Source: Macrostomum lignano (Eukaryota). From it: a DNA stretch of 64,000 bases. The notes beneath the pieces were generated by a model. That model had not been told where the DNA came from and made no database searches. It worked only from the letters and a program-made list of their open reading frames with translations. This document shows, piece by piece, positions 11,645 to 15,272 of the stretch; the stretch's first letter is position 1, and each line of letters opens with the position of its first letter. The DNA lies in the NCBI GenBank assembly GCA_002269645.1, contig NIVC01001840.1, forward strand, positions 62,001-126,000, given 5' to 3'. The position numbers were made by a program, and so were the translations under genes.

Positions 11645-13975
11645 ATGTCGCCAAGAATTCTCCTCGTCACCGTCAGCTGCTTCATGCTGGTGGCGCTGCA
11701 GTGCTGCGGTATCGCCGAAGGCGCTCCAACTTCGGCTGCTGACGTCATGGCTGACCTGCCGTATGATGGAGAGCTCAGTCCAAAACTGTGAGTAGCTACT
11801 CTGAATTGCCTTTGATGTAGCAGCTCTAATCTGCTCAAGCGCACCCGTGTAGAATCCATCTCTGTAGGAGCTTGTGTCAGATAAAGAATCCACCTCATGA
11901 CTGCGACCTAGGTAAGAGGGGAAGAGAGGGAAGAGAGGAGAGAAGAGAAGAAAGAAGAGAAGAGAGAAGAAGGGAGAAAAGAGAGAAGAGGGTAGAAGAG
12001 AGAGAAGAGAGAAGTGGGGAGAGAAGAGAGAAGAGAGGAGAGAAGAGAGAAGAGGGGAGAAAAGAAAGAAGAGAGGAGAGAGAAGAGAAGAGAGAAGAGG
12101 GGAGAAAAGAGAGAAGAGAGGAGAGAAGAGAGGAGAGAAGAGAGAGAAGATAAGAGAGAAGAGGGGAGAAAAGAGAGAAGAGAGGAGAGAAGAGAGAAGA
12201 GAGGAGAGAAGAGAGAGAAGATAAGAGAGAAGAGGGGAGAAAAGAGAGAAGAGAGGAGAGAAGAGAGGAGAGAAGAGAGGAGAGAAGAGGGGAGAAAAGA
12301 GAGAAGAGAGGAGAGAAAAGAGGAGAAAAGAGAGAAGAGAGGAGAGAAGAGAGAAGAGAGGAGAGAGAAGAGAAGAGAGAAGAGAGAAGAGATAAGAGAG
12401 GAGAGAGAAGAGAAGAGAGAAGAGGGGAGAAAAGAGAGAAGAGAGGAGAGAAGAGAGAAGAGAGGAGAGAGAAGAGAAGAGAGAAGAGGGGAGAGAAAAG
12501 AGAAGAGAGGAAAGAAGAGGGGAGAAAAGAGAGAAGAGAGGAGAGAAGAGAAGAGAGGAGAGAGAAGAGAAGAGAGAAGAGAAGAGAGGAGAGAAGAGAC
12601 AAGCCCTGAGCAGGCCAGGCCCGCGAGCCGGAGTTTGCCAAGCGCCGCTCTGTACGCCGAAGTCAGCCGCTGCCGGTGTGACTTCCGACACCGGCCCAGC
12701 AGTGACAGCAAGAAAATTCACTGTTTGACTTTCCTCAAAACAAACTTCAGTCAACAAGAAGCAATCGGTGAGGCAAAGTTTGCAGCCGGGATCTGGCATC
12801 CCGCACCTTCCGGCCTCGGAGGTCTCAGTGTATTCATCTTTGCTTTGTTAGCTATGTCTCTGAGCTTCAAGTTTCCTTGGTTACTAATAAAGTTTTACCT
12901 TGTTCTGATTCTTAGAAACTGACATTCTGGCTGCACCCGTATGTTGCTCTACTTCAGGCGCTACGAGTACAATCTGATGAGCAACATGCTGCTGCGCAAG
13001 CGGTCGAGGGCTTCGTTCGACGCTGCTCGACTGCTGGCCCGCCTGGCCGACTACAAAGCCAAGAACGACTTCCTGAACCAGAGGATTCGGTGAGCTGGAT
13101 AGATATATAGATAGATAGATAGATAGATAGATAGATAGATAGATAGATAGATAGATAGATAGATAGATAGATAGATAGATAGATAGATAGATGGTAGATA
13201 GATAGATAGATAGATAGATAGATAGATAGATAGATAGATAGATAGATAGATAGATAGATAGATAGATAGATAGATAGATAGATAGATAGATAGATAGATA
13301 GATAGATAGATAGATAGATAGATAGATAGATAGATAGATAGATAGATAGATAGATAGATAGATAGATAGATAGATAGATAGATAGATAGATAGATAGATA
13401 GATAGATAGATAGATAGATAGATAGATAGATAGATAGATAGATAGATAGATAGATAGATAGATAGATAGATAGATAGATAGATAGATAGATAGATAGATA
13501 GATAGATAGATAGATAGATAGATAGATAGATAGATAGATAGATAGATAGATAGATAGATAGATAGATAGATAGATAGATAGATAGATAGATAGATAGATG
13601 GTAGATAGATAGATAGATAGATAGATAGATAGATAGATAGATAGATAGATAGATAGATAGATAGATAGATAGATAGATAGATAGATAGATAGATAGATAG
13701 ATAGATAGATAGATAGATAGATAGATAGATAGATAGATAGATAGATAGATAGATAGATAGATAGATAGATAGATAGATAGATAGATAGATAGATAGATAG
13801 ATAGATAGATAGATAGATAGATAGATAGATAGATAGATAGATAGATAGATAGATAGATAGATAGATAGATAGATAGATAGATAGATAGATAGATAGATAG
13901 ATAGATAGATAGATAGATAGATAGACCAGATAAAAAATTCTATTCAATGCGATTTCCACTTTCAGAATGGGCTGA
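11645..13975 (+). CDS. Secreted neuropeptide precursor 1, NPF/NPY-like, predicted C-terminal -QRIRM-amide (94 aa, 3 exons)
   Basis: Exons 11645-11787, 12958-13089, 13966-13975, all GT-AG, phase 2/2. MSPRILLVTVSCFMLVALQCCGIAEG signal peptide; RKR site; SRASFDAARLLARLADYKAKNDFLNQRIRMG-stop. Intron splits the penultimate Arg codon as in NPY/NPF genes. Confidence 0.85.
11910..12600. repeat. Purine-rich (GAGAA/GAGAG) low-complexity tract in intron 1 of neuropeptide gene 1
   Basis: Almost exclusively A/G. Confidence 0.95.
13098..13925. repeat. (GATA)n microsatellite filling intron 2 of neuropeptide gene 1
   Basis: Direct; starts 8 nt after the donor GT at 13090. Confidence 0.98.
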
Positions 13976-14367
13976 GCAACCCGGACTCAATCTGGAATCT
14001 GCAGGACAAAGAGACTGAAAAAACGCATCAAATGAATACTAAGAAACGGACAAGATGTCGCTAGCAGCTACTTACAAAAGCCAAGTAGCATAGAAGGCAT
14101 ATAATAAAGCACTGTTGTTACTCAAATTTATTCTCTCTAACTAATAAACTACGGACCTTTTCGGTTTCAGCAATAAAAAACTGTTAATTCAAGATATATT
14201 CTACCTTTTTGCTCTACTTAAAGTAGCACAGTGCGGACTTGATTTTTATTCCTTTTTTAAGACAAGCCATTTGCAATGTAAACAAAGCACTAAACTTCAT
14301 CGCCTCATTTCAGCGACCGCAAAACGAATCCTCTGAAGGACAAAGATACTCGATTTCTAAGAAAAAT

Positions 14368-15272
14368 ATGATGCATCAACCAACTCGACAGATGCCACTG
14401 CTGCCTCTGCTGCTGCTGCTGCTGTCACTGCTGCTTATGGCCAGTTCTGCTGACGGCTTCCGAATTGATGGACAGCTGCATGAGGGCCCGGTTTTCAAGT
14501 GAGGCTTTGAATCCTGGGGTCTCTAGTCAAACAGTTTTTCTAGGCAGCCTCTCAAATCAATTCGAATTTTCGAACTTCAGCGCATTCCAACGCAGCCAGC
14601 GGGGCAACACAGAGACGGACCGGCTGCTGGCCCAGCTGAATGACCTCATCGAGCAGGAGAGGTTTCTGCGGTACCGCATCAGGTGACTCTGGTGTATCTT
14701 ATAACTCATATCTCATATCTTATATCTCATATCTCATATCTTAATATCTCGTATCTCATATCTCATATCTCATATCTTTTACCTCATATCTCATATCTCA
14801 TATCTTAATATCTCGTATCTCATATCTCATATCTCATATATTTTACCTCAAATCTCGCATCCTCACATATTATACCTCTTATCTAATTCTCACATCTCAT
14901 TTCTCATATCTCATTTCTCATTTCTCATTTCTCATATCTCATTTCTCATATCTCATATGATATCACAACCACTCATACCCTCTCACATCTTTTCATACCC
15001 TCTCACACATTTTCATAACCTCTCACCCACTCACACTCTCACACCCTCGCACGTACTTATAGGAAGAGAAGTAATAGATCGTCTGAGAAAGCCTGAGAGG
15101 ATCTGAGAGGGTCTGAGAGAGTGTGAGAGGCTGAGAGAGTGTGAGAGGCTGAGAGAGTGTGAGCTTACTTTCCAAATCCTCTTTCATCCCCTCGTTCACC
15201 TGCACTGTGCGTGTCAATTGTACACCTCAAATTTACTCGTACACCCCACACTTAACTTGCAGAATGGGATAA
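14368..15272 (+). CDS. Secreted neuropeptide precursor 2, paralog of precursor 1, predicted -YRIRM-amide (80 aa, 3 exons)
   Basis: Exons 14368-14498, 14581-14682, 15263-15272, GT-AG, phase 2/2. MMHQPTRQMPLLPLLLLLLSLLLMASSADG signal; RSQR site; GNTETDRLLAQLNDLIEQERFLRYRIRMG-stop; last exon cag|A ATG GGA TAA mirrors gene 1 (cag|A ATG GGC TGA). Confidence 0.85.
14700..14960. repeat. 7-bp repeat (atatctc/atttctc) in intron 2 of neuropeptide gene 2
   Basis: Direct periodicity. Confidence 0.9.

Follow-up and report, generated by a model that had tools for sequence, protein, structure and literature searches.

Two tandem prepropeptide genes in Macrostomum lignano

We analyzed a 64,000-nucleotide (nt) stretch of the genome of the flatworm Macrostomum lignano (assembly GCA_002269645.1, contig NIVC01001840.1, positions 62,001 to 126,000 of the forward strand), referred to below as the window. 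Positions 11645-15272 hold two tandem genes, gene 1 and gene 2, each with three exons and each predicted to encode a secreted precursor that ends in Arg-Ile-Arg-Met-Gly. These genes and their paralogues are termed RIRM genes here, and we asked how they relate to the family of neuropeptides Y and F (NPY/NPF). An initial annotation of the window had proposed the two three-exon models; both translated as claimed, and the coordinates and the junctions 13089>13966 and 14682>15263 were exact. The parts of the two genes are as follows.

11645-11787 (+): gene 1 exon 1 (coding sequence); start codon, signal peptide and start of the propeptide; ends in phase 2, donor GTGAGT
11788-12957 (+): gene 1 intron 1; 1170 nt, for the most part a GA-rich microsatellite (about 11923-12603)
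12958-13089 (+): gene 1 exon 2; remaining propeptide, RKR(SR) site and mature peptide; donor GTGAGC
13090-13965 (+): gene 1 intron 2; 876 nt, phase 2, within the last Arg codon; nearly all (GATA)~207
13966-13975 (+): gene 1 terminal mini-exon; A/ATG GGC TGA, i.e. third base of Arg, Met, Gly (amide donor), stop
14368-14498 (+): gene 2 exon 1 (coding sequence); start codon, Leu-rich signal peptide and short propeptide; phase-2 donor GTGAGG
14499-14580 (+): gene 2 intron 1; 82 nt, phase 2
14581-14682 (+): gene 2 exon 2; RSQR site and mature peptide; donor GTGACT; exon present in UniProt models P0001 and P0003
14683-15262 (+): gene 2 intron 2; 580 nt, phase 2, within the last Arg codon; 7-nt TATCTCA repeats
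15263-15272 (+): gene 2 terminal mini-exon; A/ATG GGA TAA, i.e. third base of Arg, Met, Gly, stop

The spliced model of gene 1, rebuilt from the window, encodes a precursor of 94 residues, MSPRILLVTVSCFMLVALQCCGIAEGAPTSAADVMADLPYDGELSPKLRYEYNLMSNMLLRKRSRASFDAARLLARLADYKAKNDFLNQRIRMG. Its mature peptide is encoded from 13004, after RKR, up to CG, the first two bases of the last Arg codon; the predicted product, SRASFDAARLLARLADYKAKNDFLNQRIRM, has 30 residues, or 28 if cleavage follows RKRSR. AlphaFold2 predicted a helix at residues 70-93 of this precursor with a predicted local distance difference test score (pLDDT) of about 84. A strong acceptor-like site ends at 11627, just 5′ of the gene 1 ATG, and AATAAA signals lie 3′ of the mini-exon at 14103, 14143 and 14172. 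The gene 2 model, rebuilt in the same way, encodes a precursor of 80 residues, MMHQPTRQMPLLPLLLLLLSLLLMASSADGFRIDGQLHEGPVFNAFQRSQRGNTETDRLLAQLNDLIEQERFLRYRIRMG, in which the mature peptide is encoded from 14603, after RSQR, up to AG, the first two bases of the last Arg codon; the predicted peptide, GNTETDRLLAQLNDLIEQERFLRYRIRM, has 28 residues. Gene 2 likewise has a strong acceptor-like site, which ends at 14313, 55 nt 5′ of its ATG, and an AATAAA at 15554, 3′ of the mini-exon. Calculated monoisotopic masses for the amidated forms are 3508.895 Da (30 residues) or 3265.762 Da (28 residues) for gene 1 and 3461.831 Da for gene 2; the corresponding values for the paralogues are 3509.868, 3555.878 and 3175.765 Da.

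All four introns of genes 1 and 2 are of the GT..AG type with pyrimidine-rich acceptors, and all four are in phase 2. In both genes the terminal exon has ten coding nt, A-ATG-GGN-stop, and both precursors end in R-I-R-M-G-stop. Three features described in the initial annotation were reproduced: the last Arg codon interrupted by a phase-2 intron, the last exon of 10 coding nt and the gapless alignment of the two peptide cores. The prepropeptide layout was recovered as well: a hydrophobic h-region, a basic cleavage site, a single predicted-helical peptide of 28-31 residues and a terminal Gly.

Paralogues and conservation of the RIRM genes

A second tandem pair, g1′ and g2′, was found at a locus (L002) on contig NIVC01000016.1.

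L002 10001-10179, 10448-10555, 11052-11061: g1′ (P0005, BOX15_Mlig030474g1); annotated, mini-exon used
L002 11366-11535, 12536-12640, 12729-12738: g2′, 95 residues; unannotated, about 0.3 kb downstream of g1′

Both g1′ and g2′ end in RIRMG-stop, and both introns of each are in phase 2; the predicted peptide of g2′ is GQSEAERLMELLRQSYARYRFLRERIRM-Gly. Presence of the same tandem pair on NIVC01000016.1 indicates that the two-gene cassette was duplicated or conserved as a unit. A fifth M. lignano member, P0008/P0012 (UniRef A0A1I8I379 / A0A1I8F280), ends in ...KAKNDFLTQRVRMG, with QRVRMG at its terminus, and its peptide is GGSFDAAKVLAKLAELKAKNDFLTQRVRM. The family thus comprises at least five genes in M. 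lignano, and each of the five members has Met as its last residue. The Arg codon is split as CG/A in gene 1, AG/A in gene 2, CG/C in g1′ and AG/A in g2′.

When the two loci were compared by blastn, the mature-peptide part of exon 2 aligned (82% over 79 nt, at the 3′ end of gene 1 exon 2), as did the mini-exon with its acceptor (16/16) and a short RLLA stretch, whereas the signal-peptide exons, introns and untranslated regions were unalignable. Over the last 29 codons, gene 1 and g1′ share 23 of 29 residues, 8 of them through different codons; gene 2 and g2′ share 14 residues, again with 8 encoded by different codons. The RIRM genes are conserved and under purifying selection, and genes 1 and 2 are more than a chance pair. 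In an exhaustive profile search with a hidden Markov model (HMM) against 1.84 billion representative proteins, the credible matches were those of the M. lignano family only; P0009-P0011, also returned by the HMM search, were rejected as low-complexity repeats. A metagenome scan revealed no relatives, with a pattern that spanned the intron and hence was hardly able to match genomic DNA.

In all four precursors tested, the first 25 residues include an n-region that is basic and an h-region that is strongly hydrophobic. The mature peptides (28-31 residues across the family) have no Pro and no internal dibasic site, and net charge is +3 to +4 in four of the five family peptides and 0 in the gene 2 peptide. 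These properties bear on the possibility that the genes encode secreted non-neuronal effectors, i.e. cationic helical antimicrobial or gland peptides. The RIRM precursors, in which a signal peptide and a propeptide precede a single helical peptide (about 30 residues) and a terminal Gly, resemble those of cecropin type in layout, and the charge of most of the peptides is also consistent with such a role. However, the hydrophobic moment of the peptides was no higher than that of shuffled sequences, for which reason we do not describe them as amphipathic, and the gene 2 peptide has no net charge. In addition, R-I/V-R-M-Gly is strictly conserved in old and otherwise diverged paralogues, and strict C-terminal conservation of this kind is typical of receptor ligands. 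An effector function is therefore very unlikely.

Existing annotation and use of the terminal mini-exon

Gene 1 corresponds to the GenBank/UniProt 'hypothetical protein BOX15_Mlig007353g1' (P0002), whose exons match exactly; exon 1 is identical to the annotated coding sequence. The assembly is Mlig_3_7, whose annotation was made purely from RNA-seq and transcript assemblies plus TransDecoder (PMC5730564); there is thus transcript evidence behind the gene 1 junctions 11787>12958 and 13089>13966. The GenBank record makes no separate gene call for gene 2, which is present only within older fused UniProt models. Gene 1 and g1′ are thus already public as 'hypothetical proteins', and gene 2 and g2′ are unannotated as genes. 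The description of both window genes as hidden holds for gene 2, which lacks its own gene call, but not for gene 1, whose exact coding sequence is in GenBank.

In two of the fused models, P0001 (A0A1I8J3R1, auto-named 'CRF domain-containing protein') and the frameshifted P0003, gene 1 exon 2 is spliced to gene 2 exon 2 through a junction at 13089>14581 of the window; P0003 also uses 14682>15263 (...TCAG/AATGGGATAAAAATGTTCG). At the second locus, P0007 joins g1′ exon 2 (10555) to an acceptor at ~11358, 7 nt 5′ of the g2′ ATG. The gene 1 poly(A) signals lie 140-210 nt 5′ of the acceptor-like site at 14313. In M. lignano, polycistronic transcripts account for about 7% of the total (PMC5730564). 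Given the fused models at both loci, this share of polycistronic transcripts and the acceptor-like sites 5′ of each ATG, the tandem pair may be co-transcribed.

Read-through of the second donor of either window gene would give a product ending in ...RIR-stop. The spliced Met-Gly end might thus be unused, with read-through yielding a non-amidated ...RIR peptide, or the reading frames might be non-functional; an in-frame TGA directly after three of the four donors is consistent with this. On the other hand, the mini-exon is included in the transcript-based GenBank models of gene 1 and g1′ and in the UniProt models of gene 2, and together with its acceptor it is among the sole conserved DNA between the loci. 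Read-through of g2′ would yield RIRFQ-stop, unlike RIR-stop, and the conserved feature is therefore not the read-through product. The initial annotation had named splicing to a different RF or RY last exon as an outcome that would overturn its models. In the regions scanned downstream of the four donors (gene 1, gene 2, g1′ and g2′) no such exon was found; the sole candidate of the form AG-N-codon-GGN-(stop/K/R) 3′ of each donor was the Met-Gly-stop exon. We conclude that disuse of the spliced end is extremely improbable.

Relation of the RIRM genes to the NPY/NPF family

NPY/NPF genes of Bilateria have a hallmark, namely that a phase-2 intron interrupts their last Arg codon (PMC7314547, PMC2953531), and the planarian npy genes, including the 'atypical' npy-11, share it (PMC2953531). 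Genes 1 and 2, g1′ and g2′ all have this intron. In two flatworm genes used as positive controls the same layout was seen. The long exon of the Sparganum proliferum NPF gene (P0047, positive for Pfam PF00159) ends in the last Arg codon and is followed by a terminal exon G-TTT-GGT-TGA; the Opisthorchis viverrini NPF-like precursor (P0055) has a terminal exon G-TAC-GGA-TGA. The RIRM terminal exon is of the same design, with ATG where those genes have TTT or TAC. NPY/NPF precursors carry a single peptide of ~28-40 residues at or near the C-terminus, behind the signal peptide and propeptide; the RIRM precursors are arranged likewise, with one peptide of 28-31 residues. The exact codon and phase of the intron, the RxRX-Gly-stop end and a terminal exon designed like that of flatworm NPF genes make an NPY/NPF origin the most likely one. 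We consider it probable that positions 11645-15272 of the window hold tandem secretory prepropeptide genes descended from the NPY/NPF lineage, which are likely to encode neuropeptides.

The canonical NPF genes of M. lignano, which a Smed-NPY profile missed and a broader profile recovered, were used for comparison.

L004 (NIVC01000624.1), 6001-6492 and about 10126-10437: tandem pair consisting of P0057 (BOX15_Mlig009822g2) and an unannotated neighbour

Both are contiguous intron-free open reading frames (ORFs), one encoding three peptides (...SVSRPRFGKR ×3) and the other two (...LSLSRFGKR and ...ASRPRYGKR). Multi-copy NPF precursors without the hallmark intron are unusual for the NPY/NPF family. 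When C-terminally anchored BLOSUM scores were calculated with the RxRXG end excluded, gene-1-type peptides gave z = 1.5-2.4 against the five M. lignano NPF peptides (p = 0.07, 0.013 and 0.024; the three sequences are not independent). Peptides of both groups are 29-31 residues long, and their (S/D)F(D/x) motifs lie equally far from the RxRX-Gly end, in one alignment column. This similarity of gene-1-type peptides to M. lignano NPFs is suggestive but weak.

Several findings weigh against an NPY/NPF origin. The RIRM peptides do not have an RxR(F/Y)-amide end; RxR and the Gly amide donor are present, and the last residue is Met. They also lack a recognizable NPY/NPF core (PF00159, Hormone_3; YLxxLNxY...GRPRF). 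A Pfam scan of four precursors gave no PF00159 match at E<=10 and only noise at E about 0.3, whereas PF00159 does match planarian npy-11 and M. lignano NPF. An HMM of planarian NPY tails gave about 0 bits on the RIRM peptides, like shuffled sequences. In the anchored test against planarian NPYs, the RIRM peptides reached z = 0.7-1.1 and true planarian NPYs 4.8-7.7, and hhalign probabilities against planarian and broad NPY alignments were 0.8% and 2.2%, respectively. Gene-2-type peptides showed no signal against the five M. lignano NPF peptides (z = 0.7). In gene structure, the RIRM genes carry an extra phase-2 intron 1 in the propeptide region that the Sparganum and Opisthorchis NPF genes do not have, and the canonical M. 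lignano NPF genes found are multi-copy and without the Arg-codon intron; the hallmark intron is thus not common to both groups within M. lignano, and convergence is possible. Finally, gene 2 is without a stand-alone transcript-based annotation, and no relatives were found outside M. lignano in libraries in which flatworm transcriptomes are poorly represented. The proposed NPF/NPY-like character was therefore borne out for the gene plan (Arg-codon intron, 10-nt terminal exon) and not for the peptide core (Pfam, HMM, anchored test and hhalign). The HMM comparison with flatworm NPY sets that the initial annotation had put forward as a check gave no significant similarity.

These observations would fit a macrostomid-specific neuropeptide family unrelated to NPY/NPF, in which the RxRX-Gly end and the Arg intron arose independently, e.g. 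by intron gain at a CAG/A or TCG/A proto-splice site. The absence of profile-level similarity, the restriction of matches to M. lignano among the 1.84 billion representatives, the canonical NPF genes without the Arg-codon intron and the additional intron 1 all point in that direction. However, it is improbable that an intron at precisely this codon and phase, an RxRX-Gly-stop end and a 10-nt exon of NPF design would coincide by chance; the peptides are in register with the M. lignano NPFs in length and in their N-terminal (S/D)F(D/x) motif; and planarian npy-11 provides a precedent. We regard an unrelated family as unlikely.

The initial annotation had also named a CRF/DH44-like affinity as a weaker alternative, in which the genes would be divergent CRF/DH44/ELH members encoding helical amidated peptides at the precursor C-terminus that act on secretin-type G protein-coupled receptors (GPCRs). 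CRH and urocortin are amidated peptides at the end of their precursors, and the RIRM peptides lie at the extreme C-terminus as well, a position that is not family-specific. The UniProt auto-name 'CRF domain-containing protein' of the fused model A0A1I8J3R1 is a lead only: sister UniProt models are auto-named 'SPX domain' and 'Alginate_lyase domain', which are plainly spurious and show that such labels are unreliable. A few pairwise scores reached z about 3 against Aplysia ELH; pairwise Smith-Waterman comparison with NPY and CRF peptides was underpowered, the true pair CRH-ELH giving only z = 1.4. The profile methods provided no support. None of the four precursors matched Pfam PF00473 at E<=10. 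When PDB was searched with the gene 1 peptide and with the family profile, all matches were to designed helical repeats or to helices of aldehyde dehydrogenase; the profile search recovered no CRF or urocortin chain, though PDB has them. A CRF/DH44/ELH HMM, in which only the human CRH sequence was verified against PDB, gave 0-2 bits, equal to shuffled sequences. The CRF/urocortin/DH44/ELH family has a helical amidated peptide at the precursor end, as is predicted for the RIRM genes, but its peptides are longer (36-46 residues vs. 28-31) and have an N-terminal activation motif, which the RIRM peptides lack, and its gene structure is different; the intron position in the RIRM genes is the hallmark of NPY/NPF and not of CRF (PMC7314547). 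Membership in the CRF family is thus a distant prospect, hardly to be expected.

Proposed maturation and evolution

On the basis of established prohormone biochemistry, signal peptidase would remove the signal peptide, and a prohormone convertase would then cut after RKR in the gene 1 precursor or RSQR in that of gene 2 (putative sites across the family are RKR, KR, RSQR or RGRR). Peptidylglycine alpha-amidating monooxygenase (PAM) would act on the terminal Gly to leave Met-NH2; because the precursors end in Gly-stop, it could do so directly, with no carboxypeptidase step. A single helical peptide of 28-31 residues with R-I/V-R-M-NH2 at its C-terminus is the predicted outcome. The last three codons of the precursor are formed only when the phase-2 intron, which divides the final Arg codon, is spliced out.

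The RIRM genes most likely constitute a divergent, species- or lineage-restricted subfamily of NPY/NPF type. In their evolution the ancestral intron and the RxRX-Gly end would have been kept, Phe/Tyr would have been replaced by Met, and the helical core would have diverged past profile recognition. If they did descend from NPF, the intron is ancestral, retained in the RIRM genes and lost from the canonical NPF genes of M. lignano; if they did not, both the intron and the end motif are convergent. The peptides are most likely candidate neuropeptide ligands of rhodopsin-type (NPY/NPF-like) GPCRs, which they would engage through the R-I/V-R-M-NH2 end.

A more far-reaching possibility, which we put forward tentatively and hold to be doubtful, is that the RIRM-amides form a distinct ligand class that split early in macrostomorphs from an intron-bearing NPF gene, has its own receptor and is encoded by a conserved, possibly co-transcribed two-gene cassette. 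The canonical NPF genes would then have become intronless and multi-copy, and the RIRM genes would have kept the gene plan and lost the core similarity. The fused models at both loci hint at co-transcription, and alternative splicing could give a two-peptide precursor.

No description of RIRMamide, of long RxRM-amides or of the gene identifiers was found in the literature searched, the scope of which did not extend to Koziol et al. 2016 and McVeigh et al. 2009. The RIRM family is apparently a modest, undescribed offshoot of a known hormone family. NPY/NPF is among the few neuropeptide systems that can be traced across Bilateria, and the aromatic C-terminal amide is treated as defining for it. 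A five-gene subfamily that keeps the diagnostic architecture with a Met-amide end and an unrecognizable core would show how far the lineage can drift, and that gene structure still detects divergent members which profile searches miss. That M. lignano also has canonical NPF genes without introns and with several peptide copies, in contrast to this subfamily, is an unusual pattern for NPY/NPF. The predicted peptides are candidates for orphan flatworm GPCRs in an animal that is transgenic and tractable by RNA interference. Gene 2 and its paralogue, unannotated in public databases, and the misleading fused models there are flagged here.

Other features of the window

The rest of the window contained the following.

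1678-2263 vs 6676-7261, 3837-4136 vs 8835-9134, and 5773-6428 vs 10767-11515: direct duplication just 5′ of gene 1, minisatellite-rich, with a spacing of 4998 nt and 100% identity; the first and third pairs are ORFs
20725-21222 (-): single-exon ORF of 165 residues with a signal peptide and Pfam Temptin_C; the sole other called gene near the tandem pair
30409-30993 (-): short-chain dehydrogenase ORF (adh_short, E = 3e-19) amid long (CTNACN)-type coding-like repeats
36191-36607 vs 53283-53699, and 38334-38774 (-) vs 54471-54911 (-): near-identical exon-sized ORFs, about 16-17 kb apart
44317-45135 (+), 49805-51910 (-), 59642-60334 (+): retroelement fragments

The copies spaced 4998 nt apart arose by tandem duplication very recently, or else the assembly is redundant there. 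Among the near-identical ORFs, one has a Pfam match to 7tm_3 (class C GPCR, E = 4e-23), and ANF_receptor is weakly matched by a neighbouring ORF; it looks as if a class C receptor gene had undergone segmental duplication. RT RNase H with an integrase zinc-binding domain is found in the retroelement fragments, as is a gag aspartyl protease; the match to GIY-YIG (possibly Penelope-like) is weak.

Comparison with known neuropeptide systems

Flatworm NPFs and planarian NPYs (Smed npy-1 to npy-11; Moniezia, Arthurdendyus, Sparganum and Opisthorchis) share with the RIRM genes a single helical peptide of ~28-40 residues and an RxRX-Gly end. They differ in having Phe or Tyr as the last residue, R-P-R and a YLxxLNxY core; the RIRM peptides have Met and R-I/V-R and lack such a core. 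The canonical NPFs of M. lignano itself differ from the RIRM genes in their GKR sites, clear NPF core, several peptide copies and lack of an Arg-codon intron.

The RIRM peptides have no N-terminal polyproline arm (PP-fold) and no C-terminal extension, as the initial annotation stated. This is correct, but it does not set them apart, being common among flatworm NPFs: Smed npy-7, npy-8 and npy-10 and the Sparganum and Opisthorchis precursors likewise have neither, and the arm is absent from the accepted flatworm NPYs npy-2, -3, -8 and -10. Since it is missing in several accepted members, the polyproline arm is weakly diagnostic in flatworms. Precursors ending in Gly-stop also occur in Smed npy-7 (RPRYG-stop), Sparganum and Opisthorchis.

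Smed-npy-11 (Collins et al. 2010, PMC2953531) ends in a non-aromatic RPRL-amide (SRPRL-amide) and keeps the NPY-type intron, and is thus a precedent for loss of the aromatic end. Unlike the RIRM peptides, it matches Pfam PF00159, scores z = 6.1 in the anchored test, has Pro in RPR and ends in GKR plus an extension.

The myomodulin-like RL/RM-amides (Smed spp-4 and spp-5, e.g. GLRILRM-amide) have the C-terminal R-M-amide that is predicted for the RIRM peptides, so that an amidated Met end does occur in flatworms (PMC8557429). Their precursors contain multiple 7-residue copies between dibasic sites, whereas each RIRM gene encodes one peptide of ~30 residues, and no multi-copy organization of the myomodulin type was found in genes 1 and 2. 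Precedents for Met or Leu in place of Phe at an amidated end, as predicted for the RIRM peptides, are myomodulins, nematode FLP-20, Smed spp-5 and Smed npy-11.

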